DNA from: Perna viridis
Taxonomy: Eukaryota
DNA length: 64,000 nucleotides
Assembly: GCA_037379345.1 (NCBI GenBank)
Contig: CM074511.1
Location: 17,794,001-17,858,000 of the forward strand
Direction: 5' to 3'
Positions 1-24,601 of the stretch are shown here, one piece after another. A model generated the notes under the pieces. It was not told the origin of the DNA and made no database searches. It saw only the letters and a program-made list of their open reading frames with translations. Position numbers and translations under genes: made by a program. The stretch's first letter is position 1. The number at the start of each line of letters is the position of its first letter.

Positions 1-399
1 ATCATTGTGTGTAGATGTTTGACTCAGTTCAATGACTTTTTTAAAGATTCCCTACATAACATTCTGTGTAATAGTTCTACTAGCTTTGTCAATACTCTAG
101 ATTTCAATTATATATGTTACTTTGGTCTAGTCAAGAAGGATAAAAATATAAACTTATACTTTGTAAATACAGTTTTATGTGCTAGAAGATTCTGTGTAGT
201 AAAGAGGAGAAATATCTCTATGAAGGATGATCATTTGATAGACATAGTGCCATATTTTAAAAATGTTCTGCAAAAACATGTGAGTTATGCATACTTGTAT
301 TATAAACAGAAGAAGTGCATGTATTTATTTGAAAAGTATTATTTTAAAAAAAATCCTGTATTAAGGATAAGTAATGATGAAGTACATATTGAGTTTTAA
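1..399 (+). CDS. C-terminal fragment of retrotransposon ORF2 (E1), 5'-truncated by the window edge
   Basis: Open frame from base 1 (IIVCRCLTQFNDFFKD...NPVLRISNDEVHIEF) that aligns with the ends of ORF2 in E2 and E3. Confidence 0.9.
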   Translation: MIVCRCLTQFNDFFKDSLHNILCNSSTSFVNTLDFNYICYFGLVKKDKNINLYFVNTVLCARRFCVVKRRNISMKDDHLIDIVPYFKNVLQKHVSYAYLYYKQKKCMYLFEKYYFKKNPVLRISNDEVHIEF

Positions 400-530
400 T
401 TGAGATCTGTTGTTAAAAATTGTTACAATTCTAACCAACACTGTGATAATATGAATTAATGGGAGACTAGCCCAATAATTCTTTTATGAATGTATTTATT
501 TGAATAAAATTTTATCAAAATAAAAAAAAA
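1..530 (+). mobile_element. Tx1/L1-clade non-LTR retrotransposon, copy E1 (3' part only), inserted in 5S rDNA
   Basis: ORF2 C-terminus homologous to E2/E3, 3'UTR stem-loop at 453-481, AATAAA, and an A-tail abutting 5S nt 28 at position 531. Confidence 0.92.
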
Positions 531-622
531 CCGGTTCTCGTCCGATCACCGAAGTTAAGCAGCGTCGAGTCCGGTTAGTACTTGGATGGGTGACCGCCTG
601 GGAATACCGGATGCCGTACACA
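531..622 (+). rRNA. 5S rRNA: 5S rRNA gene, 3' part (nt 28-119), interrupted by E1
   Basis: CCGGTTCTCGTCCGATCACCGAAGTTAAGC...GGTTAGTACTTGGATGGGTGACCGCCTGGGAATACCGG is canonical metazoan 5S containing the A box, intermediate element and C box. Confidence 0.97.
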
Positions 623-632
623 TTTCCTTTTT
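623..632 (+). terminator. Pol III T-run terminator of 5S (equivalents at 7322-7329 and 13996-14004)
   Basis: TTTCCTTTTT immediately after the 5S 3' end. Confidence 0.8.
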
Positions 633-1253
633 AGTTTCCTTCTCTTTTTATTTTATCACATAATTTTTCACAGGTTGATATTAGAGTATCCGTTCTTTGT
701 ATTAGAGTAAGCATTTAATGAAAATCTAAAATTGCAAAGCTAGTTATAAGTTTTTTAAAAGTACGAAACGAATAAGGGGGCGGGAGTATACACATTGCAT
801 GACTTGGGGACGACTTCCATCTTGCAATTGTGACTAGAATTTGGACGTCGCATGGCGACAGGCAGATGAAAAAGAGGCACGTTTGGAAGCGGCCGGTGAG
901 TAAATTTCTCTAGTCTATTTAAAACCAATTTGACAGGTTACATTACCAATATTGGATCAATTGAGTCAAAAATTAGCGCGCGCACGGACTCTTCGTGCGC
1001 GGACTGCTCAAGACAAATGAACCCCCCTCTTTGGACACAACCAGAAAAGGGAAAGGAAAGTAAGAATAAACCTGCATTTGTTATCTGCTTGTGGTTATGC
1101 GTCGGTTTGGAATTCATTTTGGAATTTTATGATATTTTTTTTGTGTAAAAACGTTTTATTTGAAATCATTATTTTCGTCACTCTGTTCATACTCGATTTA
1201 CACGACGGGACCATATTTCATGAAACTTCAGTTTGTTAAGGTACCAGAAAGTT

Positions 1254-1258
1254 TATAA
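1254..1258 (+). promoter_or_regulatory. TATA-like element at -28 of 5S (also 7951-7955)
   Basis: TATAA at the same -28 offset before both 5S starts. Upstream TATA-like boxes are typical of invertebrate 5S genes. It is lost in the terminal copy. Confidence 0.65.
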
Positions 1259-1281
1259 GGCAATATTTGACAGTATTTACT

Positions 1282-1335
1282 GTCTACGACCATATCACGC
1301 TGAAAGCACCGGTTCTCGTCCGATCACCGAAGTTA
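1282..1335 (+). rRNA. 5S rRNA: 5S rRNA gene, 5' part (nt 1-54), interrupted by E2
   Basis: GTCTACGACCATATCACGCTGAAAGCACCGGTTCTCGTCCGATCACCGAAGTTA followed by non-5S sequence. Confidence 0.96.
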
Positions 1336-1590
1336 GGTCGGTTTTTGGATGCATCATATGTAGGATGTAAACATTGTGTCGTCCGAGAATTTTTCTTTGT
1401 TTGGTGAGTTCTTCGCCGTATTTTTGTGTGTAAACATTTCCTGAACATTGTTAGATGATATTTGCTTTAAGGTGATAATAGTTTCCATATAAATATTCGT
1501 TTTATATCCCCTTTTCCTGCTTTTTCGTAGCAGGAAAAAGGGGGAGGAAAGGTGCGCTCGATTCTTTTCTGGAGATCCATCTAAGAACTA

Positions 1591-3189
1591 ATGGCGAACT
1601 TTGAAAGAAGTGGATCAGAAAGGTCCAATAGAAAGTCTTTTAATGTTGAAAATGAATTTTCAAAGGAGAAAACTGTTTTAATTTCATGTGTACTTGTAGG
1701 TTTTGGGAAAGTAGAACCTGATTCAGTAATTGATGAAATTGAATCGAAATGTGGTAGAGGAAGTGTTATAGCATGTGTGCCAAAGACCGGCAATGGATAT
1801 GAAGTTGTATTTAGAGAGAGGCAGATGATGGAACCAATTCTTGGTGATTTATCAGTCAGTGGTAAAACATTTAAAGTGACTGAATTAGAATCCAGCTTCA
1901 GATATGTTTCAATACTCAACTTGAGTATGTATGTTACTGATGCTGAAATCATTGAAAGATTTTCAAAAATTGGAGTTGAAGTGGTGTCACCAATTAAAAA
2001 ACATAAGATGAAGTCGAAAAACTATACTTATGATGGAACAAGAGTATTTAAGGCAAAACTTCCGCCTAATATGAAATTCATCCCCTACTCGATGAAGTTC
2101 TCAGTGAATGAAAAAGAAACTGCATACTATCGTGTGATCCACAATCATCAAGTTAGAGTGTGCCATGGGTGTTTTAGCCCGGACCACATATATAAAGATT
2201 GTCCTGATTTCAAGTGTTTTGAGTGTGGCGAGCAAGATCATATTAGTAGGAAATGCTTGAAAAATAAGTGTTCTTTCTGCTTTTACAAGAAGGAGAACTG
2301 TAAGTGTGAAACCTTGAGGAAGACAGACGTGGGTAATTCATGTACAGAATTCCAAACTGATTCCTACTCAGACATTTTGAAGGATCATGACATTCAACAT
2401 TCAAGTGACAGAATGTTTCATACAGAAAATGATGATTCAAGTGATGTTTCTGAAGATGATGAATGGGCACAGAACACTAGAAGATGTGAAAATGTTGTCA
2501 GTAGTGTTCATTCCCGTTGTCGTGATGATGTCAGTCATGTTGACACTAATGGCGATGCTATCCATACAACTGTGGAGGCGGTTGTTGAGCCGATAGCAAA
2601 TGGTGATAATGGTGTTGCTAGCCATATCACAGATGATGTTCCAAATGGTGTTGCTAGCCAGTGTATTGATGAATGTGACGGTGCTAGTCACGATGGAGAG
2701 AATCATGAAGTGGATGGTGATGACGTTTCTGAGGTGTTAGATGATGTTTGTGACATGGTTCATGGTGTTGAAGATATTGTAAGTGGTAAAGATAAAGAAA
2801 AAGTAGAATCAGAAATTGATCATGACAATCTTACTAATAATATAGATGTTAGCCATGTTAATTTGGTTGAATTTAATGATGTCTCTGGTGTATCTGAGAA
2901 TAATGTTAAAGATATTGATCATATATCTAATATAGAAAATACTGTCTCCTCTCAGGATAAAATCAAAAGCCAGGGAGGAGTCAGCCATAGTACTTGTGAT
3001 ACTTTGGATGATTTTGAAATGGACACTCATTCATTGACAAGTGATTGTCAGTTGACGAGTATTGATGAGTTTACTGTTGTGGGTAAGAAAAAATCCTACT
3101 TGGGTATCAAAAGGCGAAATAAATTTCAGATTAAACCTAATTTAAAGGCAGCTAGATTGTCAAATGTTAAAAATAAGTTAATGAAGTAA
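1591..3189 (+). CDS. Retrotransposon ORF1 (gag-like nucleic-acid-binding protein with CCHC zinc knuckles), 532 aa
   Basis: CHGCFSPDHIYKDC and CFECGEQDHISRKC knuckles, a further Cys cluster, an acidic low-complexity region and a basic C-terminus; layout typical of Tx1 ORF1. Confidence 0.92.
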   Translation: MANFERSGSERSNRKSFNVENEFSKEKTVLISCVLVGFGKVEPDSVIDEIESKCGRGSVIACVPKTGNGYEVVFRERQMMEPILGDLSVSGKTFKVTELESSFRYVSILNLSMYVTDAEIIERFSKIGVEVVSPIKKHKMKSKNYTYDGTRVFKAKLPPNMKFIPYSMKFSVNEKETAYYRVIHNHQVRVCHGCFSPDHIYKDCPDFKCFECGEQDHISRKCLKNKCSFCFYKKENCKCETLRKTDVGNSCTEFQTDSYSDILKDHDIQHSSDRMFHTENDDSSDVSEDDEWAQNTRRCENVVSSVHSRCRDDVSHVDTNGDAIHTTVEAVVEPIANGDNGVASHITDDVPNGVASQCIDECDGASHDGENHEVDGDDVSEVLDDVCDMVHGVEDIVSGKDKEKVESEIDHDNLTNNIDVSHVNLVEFNDVSGVSENNVKDIDHISNIENTVSSQDKIKSQGGVSHSTCDTLDDFEMDTHSLTSDCQLTSIDEFTVVGKKKSYLGIKRRNKFQIKPNLKAARLSNVKNKLMK

Positions 3190-3191
3190 CA

Positions 3192-6100
3192 ATGGAGTGG
3201 AATGTGTCATTAGTTATGAACTTTTGTTTTGTGATGGCTACTTTTAACTTCATTAGCCTTAATTGTAATGGTTTGTGTGACAAAAATAAAAGGGATTGTA
3301 TTTTTGCATTATGTATTGAAAGAAAATATGACATTGTTTGTTTACAGGAAACATTTTGGACTGATAAATTGTATGATGATATTCAAATTGATAAAACTGT
3401 ATGGGATGGTGAGATTTGTGCCAGTAATAGCATTTGTAATAGGAAAGGGGTTGCCATTCTTGTAAGTAAAAGGTTGAAAAATGTTTTTAAAGTTTGTGAG
3501 AGTGTATGTGGAAGATTAGTTCATATACAAGGTAAAATTCTTGACAAAAGTTTGGACATAATTAATTTGTATGCTCCAAATAATGTTAGTGAAAAGTGTA
3601 ATTTTTTCAATGATTGTAAAAGTAAAATATATGGAGATGAATTTATTATAATAGCAGGTGATTATAATACCATTCTTTCCCCTTTAGACAAAAGTGGGAA
3701 AACTGTTTTTTATGCTGACAGATCTTTAAAATGTCTGACTGAATTGATAAATGAAAAAGGTTTATCTGATGTATGGAGAGATAGAAATGTAGGTATTAAA
3801 ATGTTTTCAAGAAAACAAGTTGTACAAAGATTTTTAACTCAAAGTAGAATTGATTATTTTTTAGTTTCTTGTAATTTGAAACCATTTATAAAGAATGTTT
3901 TTTACAATGATACATCTTTCAGTGATCATTCTATTGTTAGTATGAAATTAGATTTTTCTGAAGTTGAAAAAGGACCTGGTGTTTGGATTTTTAACAAGTC
4001 CTTATTGAGTGATGATTTTTTTGTTGAAAAAATTAGAAATATCATACTGGATGAAATTGGTTTAGATTTTTATTTTTCACATCCATTAATTTGGTGGGAT
4101 AATTTGAAATATAAAATCAAGAAAACAAGTCAACTCTATGGTAAAGAAAAACAGAGAGAGTTATATAGATATTATAGAATACAGAATAAGTTACAAGAAT
4201 TGTCAATAAAGGCTGGTTGTGGTAATGATATAGATCATGTCAAATATTTAGAGTTGAAAGAGGAACTTGAAAGTTTAGAAAAACATAGATGTAATGGTGC
4301 TGTTATAAGATCCAAATGTCAATATTCATTAGAAAGTGATAAAAATACAGCCTATTTTTTGAATTTAGAGAAACAAAGACAGAATAGAAATATGATAAAT
4401 GGTTTAAAATATTGTGATGGTAATGTTGTCAGTGAAACTGCTGAAATTTTAGATGTTATTTATAGTTTTTATAAAAGGCTATTTTCTTGTGTACTAACTG
4501 ATTATGAAGCAATTGATAAAATGTTAGATTGTATTAACGTCAATGTTGACGTTTGTGATGTTGAAAAATGTGATGAGGATATTAATATTGAAGAAATAAA
4601 AACCTCTATAAAAGGTATGAAACAAGGAAAAACACCTGGTCCTGATGGACTTACGGTGGAGTTTTATTTATATTTTTTTAATGAGTTGAAAGATGTTTTG
4701 AAATATATTTATGATACAGTTGAAGATAATAAAGTTTTATCTAGGTCTATGAGGTATGGAATGATTAACCTAATTTATAAAAATAGAGGTGACAAAACTG
4801 ACTTGAAAAATTTTAGACCTATCAGTTTATTGAATGTAGATTATAAAATATTAGCAAGAGTCATGGCAAATAGGTTTAAATTTGTACTTCCAAAGATTAT
4901 TTCACCAACTCAGAGTTGTTGTATAATAGGTAAAGACATCTCTGATACTACTGTTACTGTAAGAGACATAATTGACTTGGTTGAAATGGATAATCTAGAA
5001 TGTTATTTGTTAAAGTTAGATCAGGAAAAGGCTTTTGACAGGGTTGGGCATGAATATCTTTTCTCGGTTTTACAAAAATTTGGTTTTGGGGAGAGATTTA
5101 TATCTTGGATAAAAGTTTTTTATACAGATATTTTTAGTACTGTCAAGTGCAATGGTTTCCTATCCAAATATTTTCCATTGGCAAACTCTGTTAAACAAGG
5201 TTGCCCAATATCTGCTTTATTGTATGTTTTAGCTGCTGAACCTTTAAGTATAATGATCAAAAAGAATGATAGAATTCAAGGTATTAACATTCCTGTTGTG
5301 AATATTGAAGAAAAAATATTTTCACATGCTGATGACACTACATTGATATTGTCTGACAAAAATTCAGTAACTGAATCCTTTAATGTTTTACAATTGTATG
5401 AACAAGCATCTGGGGCAAAATTAAATAAAGATAAATCTGACATTTTGGCATTGGGTACTGGAAAAATATCAAAAAATGATTTAGATGCTTGGAAAATTAA
5501 AGAGTGTGATGGGGTTTTACAGCTTTTAGGCATATGGATTGGCAAGAATAAAAAGTTATGTGATAATCTGAATTGGGAATGCAAAGTGCAGTCTATTTCA
5601 AAAATACTGAATCTTTGGAAAATGAGACAATTGTCAATACATGGTAGAGTAACTGTGATAAATACTCTTTTAATGAGCAAACTTTGGTATACTCTGATGG
5701 TAGTTAATATACCAGAAAAATACTATTTAGATATAAAGAAATTGTGCATCGGGTTTTTGTGGAATGATAAACCATCTTTGGTTGCTTATGATGTTGTTAT
5801 TAATAGAATACTAGATGGAGGTTTGAATTTTTCAGAAATTTTACATAAGATGTATGCGTTTAGACTTAAATTTTTAAGTCGTTTGTTAGATGTAGAGTAC
5901 AGTGCTGTTTGGAAACATCTTTGTACTTATTTCTTTTCCAAAGTACAAGTTATGAAACTTGGTATTGAGATTTTGTTCTGTGAATTTAAGCAGAGACAGT
6001 TGGGGAGTTTACCTGATTTTTATAAATGTATGCTGTTTGCTTGGGGAAAGATACGTGATTATATTGAAATTGATATCAATTTGAATAATGTATTTGACCT

Positions 6101-7091
6101 GCCTTTGGTCAATAATCCTTTAATTACTAATAATGGTAATATGCTGTATATCAAGACTTTTATAGATGCAGGCATTATTAAAGTCAAACATTTAGCATTT
6201 GAATGTAAAAAGGGATTCATGAGAGATGAGTTTGTTCAAGATATTGTTTCTAAAAAGTTTCCACAGGTATCTGCTGCTAAGATTATTAAGGTAGTACAAT
6301 GTATAAAACAATGTATTCCTGATGAATGTAAAGTTTTAGTAGAAAATAAAGAAAATGTTCGTAGAAATCTCAGTTTGAATATAGAATGTAATGTTAATAA
6401 TAGAAAATACTCTTTTCCTAGTACAACAAAGTTTTTTTATTCTATGTTGTTGAAATCATTATCAAAAGAACCGAATGCTGTCAAATATTGGTGTGAGATA
6501 TTTTCTGATTTTGATACTCAAAAAGTCCAAACAATTTTGAACTTTCCATTTTTACCAAGTGATTGGATTGAGTTATCATTTAAAATATTTCATAGAGTTT
6601 TATTTACTAAGGAGAGGTTATTGAGATGTCGCATTACTGATGATTCATTGTGTCCAGTTTGTGACGATATACATGAGGACTTAGAACATTTTATAATTTC
6701 GTGTAGATGTTTGACTCAATTCAATGACTTTTTTAAAGATTTTTTACATAATATATTGTGTAATAGTTCAGCTACCTTTATCAATATGTTAGACTTTGAT
6801 TATCTATGTTATTTCGGTCTACTCAAGAAAGATAAAAAAGTTAACTTTTATTTTGTTAATACTGCTTTATCTGTTAGAAGGTTTTATGTTGTAAAGAGAA
6901 GAAATTTAGTCATGAAAGAGGAGAAAGTTTTGCACATTATTTCTTATTTTAAATCTGTTCTTCAAAAGCATGTTAATTATGCTTACATGTATTATATACA
7001 GAAAAAGAACTTTTCTTTGTTTCAAAAATATTACTTGAATGACAATCCTGTTCTGCGCATCTCTGATGATAATGTTGTGATAGACTTTTAA
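3192..7091 (+). CDS. Retrotransposon ORF2: APE endonuclease, reverse transcriptase and C-terminal CCHC finger, 1299 aa
   Basis: APE motifs LNCNGL, LQET, YAPN, GDYN, SRIDY, SDH. RT motifs PGPDG, RPISLLNVDYKI, LDQEKAFD, KQGCPIS, HADD. Zinc finger CPVCx8Hx4C. Confidence 0.97.
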   Translation: MEWNVSLVMNFCFVMATFNFISLNCNGLCDKNKRDCIFALCIERKYDIVCLQETFWTDKLYDDIQIDKTVWDGEICASNSICNRKGVAILVSKRLKNVFKVCESVCGRLVHIQGKILDKSLDIINLYAPNNVSEKCNFFNDCKSKIYGDEFIIIAGDYNTILSPLDKSGKTVFYADRSLKCLTELINEKGLSDVWRDRNVGIKMFSRKQVVQRFLTQSRIDYFLVSCNLKPFIKNVFYNDTSFSDHSIVSMKLDFSEVEKGPGVWIFNKSLLSDDFFVEKIRNIILDEIGLDFYFSHPLIWWDNLKYKIKKTSQLYGKEKQRELYRYYRIQNKLQELSIKAGCGNDIDHVKYLELKEELESLEKHRCNGAVIRSKCQYSLESDKNTAYFLNLEKQRQNRNMINGLKYCDGNVVSETAEILDVIYSFYKRLFSCVLTDYEAIDKMLDCINVNVDVCDVEKCDEDINIEEIKTSIKGMKQGKTPGPDGLTVEFYLYFFNELKDVLKYIYDTVEDNKVLSRSMRYGMINLIYKNRGDKTDLKNFRPISLLNVDYKILARVMANRFKFVLPKIISPTQSCCIIGKDISDTTVTVRDIIDLVEMDNLECYLLKLDQEKAFDRVGHEYLFSVLQKFGFGERFISWIKVFYTDIFSTVKCNGFLSKYFPLANSVKQGCPISALLYVLAAEPLSIMIKKNDRIQGINIPVVNIEEKIFSHADDTTLILSDKNSVTESFNVLQLYEQASGAKLNKDKSDILALGTGKISKNDLDAWKIKECDGVLQLLGIWIGKNKKLCDNLNWECKVQSISKILNLWKMRQLSIHGRVTVINTLLMSKLWYTLMVVNIPEKYYLDIKKLCIGFLWNDKPSLVAYDVVINRILDGGLNFSEILHKMYAFRLKFLSRLLDVEYSAVWKHLCTYFFSKVQVMKLGIEILFCEFKQRQLGSLPDFYKCMLFAWGKIRDYIEIDINLNNVFDLPLVNNPLITNNGNMLYIKTFIDAGIIKVKHLAFECKKGFMRDEFVQDIVSKKFPQVSAAKIIKVVQCIKQCIPDECKVLVENKENVRRNLSLNIECNVNNRKYSFPSTTKFFYSMLLKSLSKEPNAVKYWCEIFSDFDTQKVQTILNFPFLPSDWIELSFKIFHRVLFTKERLLRCRITDDSLCPVCDDIHEDLEHFIISCRCLTQFNDFFKDFLHNILCNSSATFINMLDFDYLCYFGLLKKDKKVNFYFVNTALSVRRFYVVKRRNLVMKEEKVLHIISYFKSVLQKHVNYAYMYYIQKKNFSLFQKYYLNDNPVLRISDDNVVIDF

Positions 7092-7229
7092 ATATACTTA
7101 TTCATATATACTGTCAATGTAATTTAGGAAAATTTGTGATCTGTGATATGTGAATTATTGGGAGACTAGCCCAATAATTCTTTTATATGATGTTTTACTG
7201 TGAATAAAATTTTATCAAGATAAAAAAAA

Positions 7230-7321
7230 CCGGTTCTCGTCCGATCACCGAAGTTAAGCAGCGTCGAGTCCGGTTAGTACTTGGATGGGTGACCGCCTGG
7301 GAATACCGGATGCCGTAGACA
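7230..7321 (+). rRNA. 5S rRNA: 5S rRNA gene, 3' part (nt 28-119) downstream of E2
   Basis: Same 5S sequence as 531-622, but ends in GTAGAC, which pairs with the 5' GTCTAC. Confidence 0.97.
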
Positions 7322-7978
7322 TTTCTTTTAGTTTCCTTCTCTTTTTATTTTATCACATAATTTTTCACAGGTTGATATTAGAGTATCCGTTCTTTGTATT
7401 AGAGTAAGCATTTAATGAAAATCTAAAATTGCAAAGCTAGTTATTAGTTTTTTAAAAGTACGAAACGAATAAGGGGGCGGGAGTATACACATTGCATGAC
7501 TTGGGGACGACTTCCATCTTGCAATTGTGACTAGAATTTGGACGTCGCATGGCGACAGGCAGATGAAAAAGAGGCACGTTTGGAAGCGGCCGGTGAGTAA
7601 ATTTCTCTAGTCTATTTAAAACCAATTTGACAGGTTACATTACCAATATTGGATCAATTGAGTCAGAAATTAGCGCGCGCACGGACTCCTCGTGGGCGGA
7701 CTGCTCAAGACAAATGAACCCCCTTCTTTGGACACAACCAGAAAAAGGAAAGAAAACTAAGAATAAACCTGCATTTGTTATCTGCTTGTGGTTATGCGTC
7801 GGTTTGGAATTCGTTTTGGAATTTTATGATATTTTTTTGGTGTAAAAACGTTTTATTTGAAATTATTATTTTCGTCACTCTGTTCGTACTCGATTTACAC
7901 GACGGGACTATATTTCATGAAACTTCAGTTTGTTAAGGTACCAGAAAGTTTATAAGGCAATACTTGACAGTATTTACT
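7322..7978. repeat. 5S rDNA non-transcribed spacer, copy 2
   Basis: Nearly identical to spacer 1; unit length 776 bp. Confidence 0.93.
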
Positions 7979-8018
7979 GTCTACGACCATATCACGCTGA
8001 AAGCACCGGTTCTCATCC
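7979..8018 (+). rRNA. 5S rRNA: 5S rRNA gene, 5' part (nt 1-36, or to nt 40 with one mismatch), interrupted by E3
   Basis: GTCTACGACCATATCACGCTGAAAGCACCGGTTCTCaTCC followed by element sequence. Confidence 0.93.
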
Positions 8019-8277
8019 TGGAAGATGGTTTTTGGATGTACCATATGTGAAATGTAAACATCGTGTCGTCCGGAGATTTTTCATTGTTTGGTGAGTTCAT
8101 CGCCTTATCTATGTTCATAAACATTTTCTGAAGATTGCTATTTAATTATTGATTGAATGTGACCACAGTTTGCTTAGAAACAATTGTTTGTTTGCCCCTT
8201 TTCCTGCAATTTCGGTGCAGGAAAAAGGGGGAGGAAGGGTGTGTTTGATTACTATTTGGAGATCTTACTAAAAACCA

Positions 8278-9851
8278 ATGGCTAACTTTGACGGAAGTGG
8301 ACCAGACAGGTCCAATGGAAAGTCGGCTAATTATGATAGCAAATTTTCTAAGGAGAAAACTGTGTTAATTGCTTGTGCTCTGGAGGGTTTTGGAAAACTA
8401 GAGTCTGATTTGTTGATAGATGACAATGAATCGAAATGTGGTATAGGAAGTGTAATTGCATGTGTGCCAAAAACTGGTTACGGCTATGAAATTGTGTTTC
8501 GAGAAAGGCAGATGATGGAACCAGTACTCGGTGATCTGACTGTGGATGGAAAAAGATGCAAAGTGAGTGAATTGCAATCTAGCTTTAGATTAGTTTCGAT
8601 ACTTAATTTGAGTATGTATGTGACTGATGAGGAAATTGTGGATAGATTTAATAAAATTGGTGTTGAAATTGTTTCTGTTATTAAGAAGCATAAGATGAAA
8701 TCAAAGAACAATATTTATGATGGAACAAGAATTTTCAAAGCCAAACTTCCCCCGAATATGAAGTCCATCCCATATTCAATGAAGTTTTCAGTCAATGAGA
8801 AAGAGACTGCATATTACCGCGTGATTCATAATCACCAGGTAAAAGTCTGTAATGGTTGCTTTAGTCCTGACCACATGTATAAGGACTGTCCTGAATTCAA
8901 ATGTTTTGAATGTGGAGAGCAAGGTCATGTCAGCAAGAAATGCTTTAAGAATAAGTGCTCTAAGTGTTTGCATAAGAAAGTTAGCTGTAAGTGTAGTACT
9001 CCAAAGAAAACACACGTAGACAATTCTTTTGCTGAATTCCAAGGAACATTTACACGAGATGACGATGTATGGCCATGTAGCAGAATAATGGATGATGACC
9101 ATACCAATGGTGAGAGTAATATAACTGTTAATGCTCATCTTGATGATGTAAATGATGTCAGTGATAGCGGAAAGAATGATGTTTCGAATCATTCCACTGT
9201 TGAGCGTGGTGGTCAGTCTTCGGCTTGTAGTGATAATGGCGTTGCTAGTCATATCACTGAAGATGATGAGAATATTGATTTAGATGTTATTTCAAGTGTC
9301 GTTGCTAGCCATTGCAGTGATGAGGGTGATGGTAATGGTGATCTGAATGGTGCCGTTTTGGTCAATGATGATGAAGCTGAGATGGTAGATGGTGATGATG
9401 AAGTGTCTGGGGAAGTTGGACAAGATGATAGTATGGTTTATGGTGACCAAGAAAGAAACAAGACAGATAAAGAAGAAAGTAATGTTGATATTGAACTTAA
9501 TGTTAACAATGTTGATTATGTTAAATCTAAAAGTGAATGTGTTATGCCAAAAGAAAATGTTTCAGAAAATGATTGTAAAATAGGTTCTATTTTGAATATA
9601 GAAGCTTCTGTCTCCCCTCTAGAACAAATTAACAGTCAGGGGAAGTCAGTCAGAGTTCATGTGACACTTTAGACGACTTTGAAATGGATACTTTCCTGAT
9701 GACTGATAGTAGTCAAGGGGCAAGTGAAAATGATTTTACTCTTGTAGCTAAGAAAAAAAATGCCTTGGGTGTCAAGAGGCGTAGTAAGATTAATATAAAG
9801 CCTAATCTGAAAGCAGCAAGGTTATCGAATATACATAAAAAATTGAAATAA
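8278..9851 (+). pseudogene. E3 ORF1 with a 1-nt frameshift in a G-run at ~9639-9642; the homologous stop is at 9849-9851
   Basis: The called ORF stops at 9672. The E2-homologous C-terminus (CDTLDDFEMDT...KRRSKINIKPNLKAARLSN) continues in another frame to TAA at 9851. Confidence 0.85.
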
Positions 9852-9857
9852 GGAACA

Positions 9858-12800
9858 ATGGAGTGTTATATGTTTGCTATTTTACATTTTTGTTTTGCGA
9901 TGGCTTCTTTTAATTTTATAAGCCTTAATTATAATGGTCTTTGTGACAAAAATAAAAGAGAGTGTATTTTTGCACTGTGTAATGAAAGGAAATATGATGT
10001 TGTATGTTTACAAGAAACATTCTGGAATGATGATTTATATAAAATTATACAGAATGACAATAGTGTATGGGGTGGTGATATTTTTGCTAGTAATAGTAAT
10101 AGAAAAGGTGTGGCTATTCTTTTAAGTAAAAGATTGAGAAATGTTTATAAAGTTTGTGATAGTATATGTGGAAGATTATTGCATATTCAAGGTAAAGTTG
10201 AAGGTAAAAATGTTGATATAATCAATGTGTATGCTCCTAATAGTATCACTGATAAATGTACTTTTTTTAATGATTGTAAAGACAAAATATATGGAGATGA
10301 ATATTTTATAGTAGTAGGAGATTTCAATACTGCGTTCTGTCCTTTAGATAGAAGTGGAAAAACTACGTTTTATGCAGATAAATCTGTAAAATGTTTAACT
10401 AATTTGATGAATGATAAATGTTTATTTGATGTATGGAGAAATAGAAATATGAATGTCAAAATGTTTTCAAGAAAACAGGTAGTTCAAGGTTTTTTAACAC
10501 AAAGTAGGATTGATTATATTTTGGTATCTAGTAATTTAAAATCATGTATAAGAAATATTTTTTATAGCGACACATGCTTTAGTGATCATAGCATTGTAAA
10601 TATGAAACTTGATTTCTCTGAAGTTGAAAAAGGACCTGGTGTTTGGCTTTTTAATGAAACCTTATTAAATGATGATGTTTATGTTGAAAAGATTAGACAA
10701 ATTTTATTTGATGAAATTGGTTCTGATTTTTATTTGTCAAATCCACTTATTTGGTGGGATAATTTGAAATATAGAGTAAAGAAAGTCAGCCAAATATATG
10801 GAAAAGAGAAACAAAAAGAATTAAATAGAGAGTATTTTAGGTTACAAAATAAGCTGCAAGAAATGTCTGTGAAGTCAGCTTGTGGTATATCAATTGATCA
10901 TGTCAAATATTTAGAATTGAAAGATGAATTAGAAAGTTTAGAAAAACACAAATGTAATGGTGCTATTATTAGATCAAAATGTCAGTATTCAATTGAAAGT
11001 GATAAGAATACAGCTTATTTCTTAAGTTTAGAGAAACATAGACAAAACAGAAATATGATATGTAGTTTAAAAAATTGTGATGGTGTTGTTGTCAATGATT
11101 CTGCTGAAATGTTAGATGTTGTACACAATTTTTATGAGAAACTCTTTTCTTGTGTTCAAACTGATCATGAGGCAATAGAGGAAATGTTAGACTGTGTTAA
11201 CGTTAGTGTTGAAAATTGTGATATTGAAAACTGTGATTGTGAAATTATTAGTGATGAAATTGAAACCTCTATAAAAGGCATGAAAAAGGGTAAAACACCT
11301 GGCCCTGGTGGGCTTACTGTAGAATTTTATTTATACTTTTTTAGTGAGTTGAAACCTGTATTGAAATATATTTATGACTGTATTGGAGAAAATAAAATTT
11401 TGTCAAGATCTATGAGATATGGAATGATTAACCTGATTTATAAGAATAGAGGTGACAAGTCTGACCTGAAAAACTTCAGACCTATAACTTTGTTAAATGT
11501 TGATTATAAAATTTTAGCCAGAGTAATGGCCAACAGATTTAAATTTGTATTACCAAAGATTATATCACCAAATCAGAGTTGTTGTATTATTGGTAAAGAT
11601 ATTTCTGATACTACAGTAAGTATCAGAGATATTATAGAATTAGTAGAAATGGATGATTTGGAATGTTATTTGCTGAAACTTGATCGGGAAAAGGCATTTG
11701 ACAGAGTTGGACATGACTACTTATTTTCTGTATTGCAGAAATTTGGATTTGGGGAGAAATTTATTTCATGGATAAAGATATTTTATACTGACATTTTCAG
11801 CACTGTCAAATTCAATGGTTTTTTGTCCAAGTATTTTCAATTAAAGAACTCTGTAAAACAAGGGTGTCCTATATCAGCTTTGTTATATGTGTTAGTTGCT
11901 GAACCCTTGAGTATTATGATTAAAAGGAATGATAGAATTCATGGTATACAAATTCCCAATGCATCTGGTGAGGAGAAAATATTTTCACATGCAGATGATA
12001 CAACATTGATATTGTCTGACAAAAATTCAGTAAATGAGGCCTTTGGAGTTTTAAATTTGTATGAACAAGCATCTGGGGCAAAATTGAATAAAGATAAATC
12101 TGAAATTTTGGCATTGGGTACCGGAAAGGTATCGAAACAAGAAATAGATGCTTGGAATATTAAAGAGTGTGATGGGGTTCTTCAGCTTTTAGGTATATGG
12201 ATTGGCAAAGACAAAACTGTTTGTGATAATTTAAATTGGGATTGCAAAGCGCAATCTATTTCAAAATTATTGAATTTTTGGAAAATGAGACATTTATCAA
12301 TACAGGGTAGAGTAACGGTTATAAATACCTTGTTGATGAGTAAATTATGGTATACTCTAATGGTGGTTAATATACCTGAGAAATACTATTTAGACATTAA
12401 AAAGATGTGTGTAGATTTTTTGTGGAATAATAAGCCATCATTGGTTGCATATGATGTTATAATAAATAGAGTTTTGAATGGTGGTTTAAATTTTCCAGAT
12501 ATATTTCACAAAATGTATGCTTTTAGACTTAAATTTTTAAGTCGATTGTTAGATAATGATTATAATGCAGTGTGGAAACATACTTGCACTTATTTTTTAT
12601 CAAAAGTTCTAGATATGAATCTTGGTATGGAAATTCTATTTTGTGATCTTAATAATAGACAATTAGGTATTTTACCTGATTTTTTTAAGTGTATGTTATA
12701 TGCTTGGGGAAAGATTCGTACTCATATGGAAATTGATATAAATGTGAATAATGTATTTGATATTCCATTGTTTTATAATCCAATGATAGTAAATGATGGG

Positions 12801-13753
12801 AAAATGTTGTATATTAAACCCTTTGTAGATGCAGGAATAGTTAAAATTAAAGACTTGGCATTTGAATGTAAAAAAGGTTTTTTTTGAAGAACAAATATGT
12901 ACAGGATATAGTCTCTCAAAGGTTTCCTGAGTTAGTTGCTGATAGAATTGTTGATGTAGTTCAGTGTATTAAGCAGTGTATTCCAGAACAGGTAAAACGT
13001 TTAGTCAGAGAAAATGCATATAACTATAATAAACCTGTTTTGAATGTAGTATATAATGATAATGGTAAAAAATATACATTACCTAGAACGGCAAAAATTT
13101 GTTATGGTATGCTCTTAGAAACTAGTACAATAATGCCAAATGCTGTCAGCTACTGGTATGAAGTATTTAGTGATTTTAATGTACAAAAGGTTCAAAATAT
13201 TTTGAATTTTCCATTTTTACCTAGTGACTGTATTGAAACATCGTTTAAAATTTTCCATAGAGTTTTATTTACGAAGGAGAGATTATTCAGATGTCATATT
13301 ACTATTGATTCTTTATGTCCAGTATGTTATGATGTACATGAAGATTTGGAACATCTTATAATTTCATGTAGATGTTTAACTAAATTCAACAACTTTTTGA
13401 AGGATTTCCTACATAATATTTTGTGCAATAGCTCTACAAGATATGTCAATATGCTTGATTTTAATTTTCTATGTTATTTTGGATTAACTGAGAAAGATAA
13501 AAACAGTAACTATTATTTTGTTAATACTGTCTTAGCATTTAGAAAATTTTGTGTTGTGAAAAGGAGAAATGTAGCTGTGAAAGATGAGAAAGTACTAGAT
13601 ATTCTAAATTATTTTAAGTCCGTACTTCAGCGACATGTAAATTATGCTTATATGTATTATAAAAAGAAGAACTTTTCATTGTTTGAAAAATACTACTTGA
13701 AAAGAAATCCTGTTTTACGTATCTGTGACGAAAATGTTGTGATTGACTTTTAG
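9858..13753 (+). pseudogene. E3 ORF2 (APE-RT-CCHC), split by a frameshift in a T8 run at 12878-12885
   Basis: ORFs 9858-12887 and 12884-13753 together align end to end with E2 ORF2. Confidence 0.88.
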
Positions 13754-13903
13754 TATGCAAGCCATTATATAATATGGAAGATTGACTTAACGTACATGAT
13801 ATTAATAACTTTTATCTGTGATATGTGAATTAGTGGGAGATTAGCCCAATAATTCTTTTATATGTAAATATATATCTGTGAATAAACTTTTATCAAGAAA
13901 AAA

Positions 13904-13995
13904 CCGCTTCTCGTCCGATCACCGAAGTTAAGCAGCGTCGAGTCCGGTTAGTACTTGGATGGGTGACCGCCTGGGAATACCGGATGCCGTACACA
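13904..13995 (+). rRNA. 5S rRNA: 5S rRNA gene, 3' part (nt 28-119) downstream of E3
   Basis: 5S sequence with G31C and G116C variants. Confidence 0.96.
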
Positions 13996-14612
13996 TTTCT
14001 TTTTAGTTTCCTTCTCTTTTTATTTTATCACATAATTTTTCACAGGTTGATATTAGAGTATCCGTTCTTTGTATTAGAGTAAGCATTTAATGAAAATCTA
14101 AAATTGCAAAGCTAGTTATTAGTTTTTTAAAAGTACGAAACGAATAAGGGGGCGGGAGTATACACATTGCATGACTTGGGGACGACTTCCATCTTGCAAT
14201 TGTGACTAGAATTTGGACGTCGCATGGCGACAGGCAGATGAAAAAAGAGGCACGTTTGGAAGCGGCCGGTGAGTAAATTTCTCTAGTCTATTTAAAACCA
14301 ATTTGACAGGTTACATTACCAATATTGGATCAATTGAGTCAGAAATTAGCGCGCGCACGGACTCCTCGTGCGCGGACTGCTCAAGACAAATGAACCCCCC
14401 TCTATGGACACAACCAGAAAAAGGAAAGGAAACTAAAAAAAACCTGCATTTGTTATCTGCTTGTGGTTATGCGTCGGTTTGGAATTATTATTTTCGTCAC
14501 TCTGTTCGTACTCGATTTACACGACGGGACCAGATTTCCAGAAAGACAAAATCTTTCCTCAGTTTGTTAATGTACCAGAATATTTAGAAGGCAAATTTTT
14601 ACGCCATTTACT
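13996..14612. repeat. 5S rDNA spacer, copy 3 (terminal), with an internal ~50-bp deletion and a diverged last ~80 bp
   Basis: Near-identical to spacers 1 and 2 up to ~14530, then clearly more diverged. Confidence 0.88.
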
Positions 14613-14657
14613 GTTTACGACCGTATCACGGTTCTCTTCAAGTCCATTAAGTACTTG
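14613..14657 (+). pseudogene. Degenerate terminal 5S pseudogene with internal deletions
   Basis: GTTTACGACCGTATCACG (nt 1-18), then GTTCTC (nt 31-36), then TTCAAGTCCATTAAGTACTTG (similar to nt 61-81). Confidence 0.72.
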
Positions 14658-24453: not shown

Positions 24454-24601
24454 NNNNNNNNNNNNNNNNNNNNNNNNNNNNNNNNNNNNNNNNNNNNNNN
24501 NNNNNNNNNNNNNNNNNNNNNNNNNNNNNNNNNNNNNNNNNNNNNNNNNNNNNNNNNNNNNNNNNNNNNNNNNNNNNNNNNNNNNNNNNNNNNNNNNNNN
24601 N
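24454..24601. other. Assembly gap (148 N)
   Basis: Run of N. Confidence 1.

Follow-up and report, generated by a model that had tools for sequence, protein, structure and literature searches.

Independent LINE insertions at one nucleotide of a 5S rRNA gene mini-array in Perna viridis, and their probable recognition of Pol III genes

At the start of a 64,000-nucleotide stretch of the Perna viridis genome (the window), three LINEs, E1, E2 and E3, interrupt neighbouring 5S rRNA genes at the same nucleotide. Were these elements multiplied together with the unit that holds them, or did separate lineages arrive independently, and what do they recognise? We consider it highly probable that at least eight insertions, these three among them, were made independently in an isolated 5S mini-array by an L1/Tx1-like family that recognises Pol III genes.

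The window begins within this isolated mini-array on contig C1, which is 41.6 kb long and spans window positions -26970 to 14630. Ten of its units can be scored at the target site, of which eight are interrupted and two intact. The insertions comprise E1, E2, E3 and five more just upstream of the window; two array elements, X0 and S, have no LINE coding capacity. Within the window, the array has the following features.

1-530, + strand: 3′ end of E1 (full element, window positions -5267 to 530; ORFs broken, with several frameshifts)
531-622, + strand: 5S nt 28-119, the part of the split unit that lies 3′ of E1 (Rfam; A27 may be tail)
623-1281, + strand: 5S spacer of 659 nt, 96.2-98.5% identical to other spacers of the mini-array
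1282-1335, + strand: 5S nt 1-54, the part of the split unit that lies 5′ of E2 (the 27-bp target-site duplication consists of nt 28-54)
1336-7229, + strand: E2, full length, 5.9 kb (5′ UTR, ORF1, ORF2, 3′ UTR and poly(A) tail)
1591-3189, + strand: E2 ORF1, open, 532 aa
3192-7091, + strand: E2 ORF2, open, 1299 aa, with APE, RT and zf-RVT
7230-7321, + strand: 5S nt 28-119, 3′ of E2 (Rfam)
7322-7978, + strand: 5S spacer between the E2 and E3 units
7979-8018, + strand: 5S nt 1-40, the part of the split unit that lies 5′ of E3 (the 13-bp duplication, with one mismatch per copy, consists of nt 28-40)
8019-13903, + strand: E3, full length (ORF1 ends early; ORF2 has one frameshift)
8278-9672, + strand: E3 ORF1, ending early, 464 aa
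9858-12887 and 12884-13753, + strand: E3 ORF2, split over two frames by one frameshift
13904-13995, + strand: 5S nt 28-119, 3′ of E3 (Rfam)
13996-14612, + strand: last array spacer and the most diverged (96.0-97.2% over aligned sites, plus indels)
14613-14630, + strand: 5S nt 1-18 and no more of the gene, with unique DNA beyond this right array edge

The unique DNA that follows the final 5S fragment places the array edge here. Rfam returns three full-length 5S calls because the A-rich element tails substitute for 5S nt 1-27.

At the 3′ junctions of E1, E2 and E3, poly(A) is followed by CCGGTTCTCG (CCGCTTCTCG in E3), corresponding to 5S nt 27/28, where A27 could belong to the tail or to the target. 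The same join in sense orientation is found in all eight insertions of the array and in at least 17 places elsewhere in the genome, and the probability that the site coincides by chance is negligible (about (1/778)^7). The 5′ junctions are all unlike. E1 begins after 5S nt 1-38, E2 after 1-54, E3 after 1-40 and S after 1-64, and the target-site duplications are unequal (11 bp for E1, 27 bp for E2 and 13 bp for E3), while for Em1, T2 and D the 5′ join falls in the spacer (position 630, 325 and 265, respectively) and target sequence is deleted. Extra Gs are present at the 5′ end of full-length copies. Target-primed reverse transcription (TPRT) would have made each array insertion. Insertion is always in sense orientation relative to the target gene, and the second nick varies in position, so that the target is either duplicated over 11 to about 149 bp or deleted.

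An earlier note on this DNA had judged by eye that the three proteins are roughly two-thirds identical in the APE and the C-terminus and closer in the RT, with the intervening 5S and spacer DNA only a few percent apart, and measurement bears out both estimates. Amino acid identity of ORF2 is 73.1% between E1 and E2, 74.1% between E1 and E3 and 75.2% between E2 and E3; by region it is 67-70% in the APE, 86-87% in the RT and 67-69% in the C-terminus. For ORF1 the figure is 51-58%, and for whole elements, compared as nucleotides, it is 74-77%, against 96.0-98.8% for the spacers of the array. The comparison of ORF2 dN/dS with spacer divergence that the note proposed gave dN/dS of 0.15-0.17 at dS of 0.93-1.02 for the three pairs (E2-frame codons, gaps and stops excluded), with about 0.25 for ORF1; the value near 1 expected of neutral decay was not seen. 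The same-subfamily pair Em1 and E2 is 98.3% identical, with dN/dS of 0.5-0.9. The best explanation is that the subfamilies of this family diverged as active elements under purifying selection.

Closer relatives of each element lie outside the array, with at least 28 copies of E1 (97% identity), at least 29 of E2 (97-98%) and at least 25 of E3 (97-99%) elsewhere, each subfamily numbering at least 25-30 copies at 97-99% on many chromosomes. Tandem duplication of one inserted 5S unit, with the elements decaying while gene conversion kept 5S and spacer homogeneous, would fit the common orientation, the identical 3′ junction and the regular spacing of about 6.7 kb. It is nevertheless refuted by 5′ junctions and duplication lengths that differ between copies, by dN/dS far from the value of about 1 expected under decay, and by dozens of copies on other chromosomes that match each element at 97-99% when its array neighbours match at 74-77%; we give it almost no credence. 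The unequal duplications, the low dN/dS and the close copies on other chromosomes together argue for independent insertions, and the earlier note was right that three long-separated sublineages had struck the same nucleotide of neighbouring 5S units without tandem duplication.

The order E1-E2-E3 is as given in the assembly alone (chromosome-scale, 46 contigs), and both the elements and the 5S units are multi-copy, so an assembly mis-join of repeats could have placed together elements that are not truly adjacent. We regard this as very unlikely given the scale of the assembly and given that the array and its surroundings are free of Ns, the sole N run of the window being 24454-24601. Furthermore, neither the 659-nt spacer (by blastn) nor the 27-nt 5S 5′ end finds a match in the 10 kb left of the array, the spacer after one examined C5-array element matches the C1 spacer only over nt 192-376 (74%), and all junctions are well-formed TPRT junctions.

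The family extends well beyond these three elements. Further groups are E1b, at 90% identity, and those of D, at 97-98%, 95% and 87-89%, with D sharing 48% amino acid identity with E2 in ORF2 and 27% in ORF1. On the best explanation, the family has split in this genome, for which the earlier note had proposed a subfamily count, into two deep lineages with at least seven subfamilies between them: E (E1, E1b, E2 and E3) and D (Da, Db and Dc). ORF2 contains the Pfam domains Exo_endo_phos, RVT_1 and zf-RVT and is colinear with human L1 ORF2p over 864 residues (19-882; phmmer E = 9e-75); for its residues 251-500, Pfam and PDB gave nothing firm. ORF1 had no Pfam match at the default threshold, including to the L1-type Transposase_22 / RRM-CTD domains, and no useful match in PDB; its residues 208-222 gave a weak zinc-knuckle hit (E = 0.0097). 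Judged from these sequence features, the family would be an L1/Tx1-like LINE, having an APE endonuclease, RT, zf-RVT, two ORFs, a poly(A) tail and variable duplications. Among named proteins, the closest are RT proteins of Mytilus that carry no annotation, and no Danio proteins were among the 120 best protein matches.

Occupancy of the mini-array is high. Eight of its 10 5S units are occupied, compared with 12 of 114 in C9 (about 10%) and 5 of 424 in C5 and others (about 1%; Fisher p = 2e-10), as counted from an assembly in which array sizes may be collapsed. An array-edge or orphon setting, as suggested earlier, fits such a bounded and heavily occupied array, and we infer that the mini-array is saturated because interrupted units stay in a small orphon array. 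In 28S rDNA, R1 and R2 present a comparable case, in which several old lineages share one multicopy-gene niche and inserted units build up where homogenisation is weak. The coexistence of old lineages is alike; unlike the present family, R1 and R2 are strictly 28S sequence-specific. Preferential insertion, rather than relaxed removal, might instead explain the high occupancy, through an accessible or transcribed locus or through cis insertion from an active resident such as E2, which has both ORFs open and whose type accounts for three of the eight array insertions; the large contrast with the other arrays also speaks for it. We think this rather unlikely, since the E2-type copies of the array (97-98.3% identical to E2) are no closer than copies on other chromosomes (97-98%), at least five different lineages contributed insertions, and spacer divergence of 1.2-4%, of the order of the insertion ages, fits a static, unhomogenised array.

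To describe targets outside the C1 array, we sampled 89 copies from four lineages. Eighty-three lie in tRNA or tRNA-like genes, five in 5S genes and one in a 140-nt RNA gene with an A box. E2-type copies occupy 27 tRNA or tRNA-like genes and two 5S genes; E3-type copies occupy 16 tRNA or tRNA-like genes, three 5S genes and the A-box RNA, a tandem gene that matched no Rfam family. All 20 E1/E1b copies are in tRNA genes and all 20 D copies in tRNA or tRNA-like genes. The tRNA targets span more than 20 anticodon classes, and a single subfamily strikes at least 15-20 tRNA types plus 5S. Type 3 Pol III genes (U6-like) were not found among the sampled targets.

The position of insertion is similar across these genes. 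The first, bottom-strand nick is precise, falling at nt 27/28 in 5S and just past the D-loop, at about nt 21/22, in tRNA genes, where the first base other than A falls at nt 20-25 in 19 reconstructed targets; in the A-box RNA the site is nt 25/26. Earlier sites occur in tRNA-His (nt 9/10 in M. edulis and about 14/15 in the present genome) and tRNA-Ile-TAT (18/19), so the position is not strictly constant. Every junction lies inside RNA-coding sequence, with none upstream or downstream of the coding region, and the position is fixed relative to many different Pol III genes, whatever the local sequence. Related elements were found inside a tRNA-His array of Mytilus edulis (42% aa identity, 16-bp duplication) and inside tRNA-Leu-CAG on a metagenome contig (58% aa). 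No recognisable tRNA adjoins a Patella relative (39% aa), and a 70% identical Logan contig stops short of both junctions.

These targets bear on whether the family specialises, like Mutsu, in 5S rDNA in a sequence-specific way, with an endonuclease that reads 5S and sublineages sharing a single 5S niche. The nt 27/28 junction is exact in all of at least 25 5S insertions, as such specialists would leave it, and in zebrafish, too, Mutsu subfamilies are found side by side at about 20 nt into 5S genes (PMC5340908). Restriction to 5S is contradicted by the census, which places 83 of 89 copies in tRNA or tRNA-like genes, representing over 20 anticodon classes, and one in another small RNA gene, and tRNA targets share no sequence with the 5S site except the preceding A; we therefore rate specialisation on 5S as highly improbable. 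The earlier claim that the lineages had kept one target holds for the 5S nucleotide within the array and is not supported as a claim of a 5S niche, since all three lineages, together with D, are mostly in tRNA genes. 5S seems to be a minor target of a family aimed at Pol III genes generally.

From the diversity of targets, we infer recognition of Pol III genes rather than of a 5S sequence. The elements would recognise Pol III genes whose promoter is internal (tRNA, 5S and one A-box RNA) and nick about 21-27 nt into the RNA-coding region. Recognition probably proceeds via the Pol III transcription apparatus or promoter geometry. A weak A-box-like string lies 5′ of the 5S site, so degenerate sequence reading may be involved. 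We advance more tentatively, at somewhat short of even odds, that an animal LINE clade (at least seven subfamilies, with Mytilus relatives) finds its targets by docking on the Pol III apparatus instead of reading DNA, and nicks about 21-27 nt inside any internal-promoter gene. The second nick would often fall past the terminator, so that a long duplication restores a complete gene upstream, permitting a gene-sparing life in essential multicopy genes, with the 5S orphon array as a graveyard.

Mutsu elements, reportedly described by Kojima and Fujiwara in 2004 as 5S rRNA gene-specific LINEs of zebrafish, are one point of comparison. The MutsuDr subfamilies belong to the L1/Tx1 clade (Locati et al. 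2017, PMC5340908). Like the present family, Mutsu combines two ORFs, APE, RT and a poly(A) tail in a LINE of about 5.5-6 kb, inserts in sense orientation at a fixed site tens of nucleotides into the 5′ part of the 5S gene, and has several diverged subfamilies sharing 5S arrays. By description, each Mutsu subfamily reads its own 5S target about 20 nt from the 5′ end (PMC5340908), whereas the present family uses nt 27/28 and its subfamilies sit mainly in tRNA genes. The Dictyostelium L1-like LINEs TRE5-A and TRE3 and the yeast LTR elements Ty3 and Ty1 target Pol III genes (PMC5911963, PMC5006619), and they too occupy many tRNA and 5S genes whatever the sequence, at a fixed position relative to the gene. 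However, these elements stay out of the gene, landing about 48 bp before it, 40-150 bp beyond it or at its transcription start site, and do so in microbes with compact genomes, whereas the present family, in an animal genome of 723 Mb, inserts about 21-27 nt inside the coding region. Dada DNA transposons place themselves within genes for tRNA, 5S and snRNA, in many cases close to the A box (PMC3706591, PMC8869645). They resemble the present family in occupying tRNA and 5S genes, but they are DDE DNA transposons, each family being sequence-specific for one or few gene types, whereas one retrotransposon subfamily here takes a wide range of tRNA types as well as 5S.

To our knowledge, Pol III-targeting retrotransposons are understood mechanistically only in yeast and Dictyostelium, where they land beside genes. 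Site-specific animal LINEs (R1, R2, Mutsu and Keno) are thought to read DNA sequence. A LINE family that enters tRNA, 5S and other A-box genes at corresponding positions joins these two ideas, and the array is a clean natural record of one nucleotide struck eight times, in dated and independent events, by at least five lineages. The array also illustrates how small orphon arrays gather interrupted units that are mostly absent from large arrays. The family would provide a natural animal system for protein-guided LINE targeting.

Rfam calls three 5S rRNA genes in the window (502-622, 7202-7321 and 13877-13996); read directly, none of the three is intact. Each call joins a 5.9-kb element's A-rich tail to 5S nt 28-119, and it scores as full length because the element tail stands in for nt 1-27. 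The 5' piece of each split gene lies ~660 bp further downstream, immediately before the next element.

Units at the left end of the window
1-530: 3' end of E1, then 5S nt 28-119, spacer and 5S nt 1-54
1336-7229: E2, then 5S nt 28-119, spacer and 5S nt 1-40
8019-13903: E3, then 5S nt 28-119 and spacer
14613-14630: 5S stub (nt 1-18), with unique DNA beyond

The domains Exo_endo_phos, RVT_1 and zf-RVT are present in E2 ORF2 (1299 aa), which aligns colinearly with human LINE-1 ORF2p along a stretch of 864 residues (E = 9e-75); a weak zinc knuckle is the sole match in ORF1 (532 aa). On this domain set and colinearity, E1, E2 and E3 are classed as L1/Tx1-like LINEs. The tail motif TGAATAAAnTTTTATCAAGA is kept across all three despite an overall identity of only ~75%. 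By analogy with other 5S genes, the internal control region presumably persists in the downstream halves, and Pol III transcripts initiated within the last ~27 nt of an element are conceivable. Positions 14631-64000, which include a single N run (24454-24601), contain neither tRNA genes nor ORFs reaching 200 aa, placing the 5S units outside the tRNA clusters that house most copies.

We extended the analysis 40 kb upstream (L032, L094, L031 and L033) and found that these units belong to an isolated 5S mini-array spanning window positions -26970 to 14630, negative coordinates being upstream of the window; to its left, the stretch examined holds neither 5S nor spacer DNA. The earlier note's impression of heavy occupancy holds, but its figure of three in three becomes eight of ten units with a scorable site across the whole mini-array, two being intact (-26233 and -25422). 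All eight insertions lie at 5S nt 27/28.

Insertions in the mini-array
X0: without LINE ORFs; 5' junction not located
T2: E2-type, 5' truncated; 5' junction in spacer (position 325)
D: deep lineage, 48% (ORF2) and 27% (ORF1) amino acid identity to E2; 5' junction in spacer (position 265)
Em1: E2-type; 5' junction in spacer (position 630)
S: 1.5 kb, without LINE ORFs, E2-like tail; 5' junction 5S 1-64, 37-bp duplication
E1: 5' junction 5S 1-38, 11-bp duplication
E2: 5' junction 5S 1-54, 27-bp duplication
E3: 5' junction 5S 1-40, 13-bp duplication

Element S is a poly(A) retroposon in the same 5S site (window -7640 to -6056; L033:2360-3944). Its final ~60 nt are 85% identical to the 3' tail of E2, and one of its ORFs weakly resembles HVSL/USB1 (PF09749, E = 3e-4); S could be a retrocopy, or else a non-autonomous passenger moved in trans. 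X0, a poly(A) insertion in that site ending at window -26971 (L094:3029), has a D-lineage-like tail (AATAAAGATAAAA); its last 3 kb show no similarity to the LINE proteins of the family.

The 3' junctions of E1, E2 and E3 are identical and their 5' junctions differ, the duplicated 5S stretch being nt 28-38, 28-54 and 28-40, respectively. A duplicated unit would be expected to show a single shared junction, so the three are independent insertions. Each is a member of a young subfamily dispersed over many chromosomes, with at least 29 other E2-type copies (97-98% identical), at least 25 E3-type copies (97-99%) and at least 28 full-length E1-type copies (96-97%) plus a group at 90%. Unequal 5' junctions and dispersed subfamilies bear out the earlier note in preferring independent insertion to tandem duplication, and its observation of divergent elements amid near-identical spacers is likewise confirmed. 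Codons were compared in an alignment of the three elements, all read in the E2 frame; gaps and stops were omitted, and the frames were neither repaired nor replaced by a consensus. Pairwise amino acid identity in ORF2 is 73-75%, compared with 96.0-98.8% identity between the inter-element spacers; identity is 67-70% in the endonuclease (APE) domain, 86-87% in RT, 67-69% in the ORF2 C-terminus and 51-58% in ORF1, and 74-77% at the nucleotide level over whole elements. ORF2 dS is 0.93-1.02 with dN/dS of 0.15-0.17 (~0.25 in ORF1), and the ratio near 1 that the earlier note set as its refutation is absent. Em1, the E2-type copy a short way upstream of the window, serves as a control: it shares 98.3% identity with E2, and the pair's dN/dS of 0.5-0.9 has the look of post-insertion decay.

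Genome-wide, the uninterrupted-site pattern has 527 matches and the junction pattern 24: 7 on C1 (the contig carrying the window; the E3 junction, with two mismatches to the pattern, is left out), 5 on C5 and 12 on C9, where the 5S variant has 102 uninterrupted sites. With array sizes as assembled, occupancy is ~80% in the C1 mini-array versus ~10% in the C9 array and ~1% in C5 and the remaining arrays (Fisher p = 2e-10 for the contrast between arrays). This agrees with the suggestion that inserted units concentrate at an orphon, and the contrast fits relaxed removal and preferential insertion alike.

The 3' flanks of copies outside the mini-array were read for four lineages.

Targets of copies outside the mini-array
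E2-type, 29 sampled: 27 tRNA or tRNA-like, 2 5S, 0 other
E3-type, 20 sampled: 16 tRNA or tRNA-like, 3 5S, 1 other
E1/E1b, 20 sampled: 20 tRNA or tRNA-like, 0 5S, 0 other
D (three subfamilies: 97-98%, 95% and 87-89%), 20 sampled: 20 tRNA or tRNA-like, 0 5S, 0 other

This LINE family is not 5S-specific: tRNA or tRNA-like targets dominate in every lineage sampled, at odds with the idea of lineages sharing one target in a single niche. The tRNA targets include Cys, Tyr, Ile, Ala, Leu, Thr, His, Arg, Glu, Lys, Ser and Gly. The lone other target, of an E3-type copy, is a gene for a strongly folded ~140-nt RNA (predicted -59 kcal/mol) split at nt 25/26 (G000:C11:1438943-1442083, minus strand; L097). 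An A-box-like TAGCGGTGTGG occupies nt 11-21; the gene also has a TATA-like string upstream and a T-run terminator, matches no Rfam family and recurs in tandem (at least 40 copies, 930-bp period, C11:1.40-1.44 Mb). An odd tRNA-like target (…GATGTTTAACTTTAAAATGCGAAGACGTAGGTTCAAATC…, T-run terminator) at G000:C2:52.19-52.39 Mb (L017, L037, L131 and L141) is shared by the E2, E3, Da and Dc lineages; ARAGORN made no tRNA call at the single copy reconstructed (L037).

All insertions are in sense orientation. Nineteen targets could be reconstructed by joining their two flanks; in these, the first base other than A that follows the tail corresponds to tRNA nt 20-25, just past the D-loop; the nick falls at nt 27/28 in 5S and 25/26 in the ~140-nt RNA. 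In tRNA-His it falls earlier than in other tRNAs, at ~nt 14/15 here (L013 and L065) and nt 9/10 in Mytilus edulis (L100:1120-1145 and 7020-7045), and in tRNA-Ile-TAT at nt 18/19, reproduced by two different lineages. Target duplications range from 11 to ~149 bp, and those of 65 to ~149 bp pass through the Pol III terminator (L059/L007, L067/L015, L071/L020, L070/L019 and L060/L008), thus leaving a complete tRNA or 5S gene upstream and the gene undestroyed. The first nick is precise, the second variable and the orientation fixed. At the 5' end of full-length copies, a few extra Gs precede a conserved GGTTTTTGGATG motif; the variable G-rich bases between target and GGTTTTTGGATG (GGGGTC, GAGGTC, GGAGACT and similar) were seen in E2-type and E3-type copies (L054-L093) and at window 1336 and 8019. 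Since untemplated additions occur at the 5' ends of capped LINE RNA, the extra Gs suggest that the template is a capped transcript of the element itself rather than a Pol III co-transcript.

Among named proteins, the best matches come from Mytilus species. In M. edulis, an element with a D-like tail (42% identical) interrupts a single tRNA-His gene within a tandem array, with a 16-bp duplication, and a metagenome contig carries another element (58% identical) that adjoins tRNA-Leu-CAG at the usual site; no recognisable tRNA adjoins a 39%-identical Patella copy. Full-text searches of an incomplete literature collection, Repbase not included, turned up no account of animal LINEs that insert within tRNA genes, and a bivalve transposon survey is silent on tRNA targeting (PMC10294476). 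In zebrafish, the LINE Mutsu is specific to 5S genes; its many subfamilies coexist, and each has a separate target sequence ~20 nt into the 5S gene (PMC5340908), whereas the Perna viridis family is mostly in tRNA genes and enters 5S at nt 27/28. Dada DNA transposons insert sequence-specifically within tRNA and 5S genes (PMC8869645). The Pol III-targeted retrotransposons of yeasts and social amoebae reviewed in PMC5911963 all integrate beside genes; those of P. viridis integrate inside them.

The nick positions are equally compatible with measurement from the transcription start and from the A box. In the former case, the distances from the start to tRNA nt 21/22 and to 5S nt 27/28 would be roughly equal, given an assumed typical pre-tRNA leader; for the latter, tRNA genes and the ~140-nt RNA gene have the nick 2-4 nt past the A box, the 5S site being preceded by a weak A-box-like string only. 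The tRNA-His offset may help to tell the two apart. What the targets have in common is that they are Pol III genes with internal promoters, not a shared sequence, and recognition probably relies on the Pol III machinery or on the geometry of the promoter.
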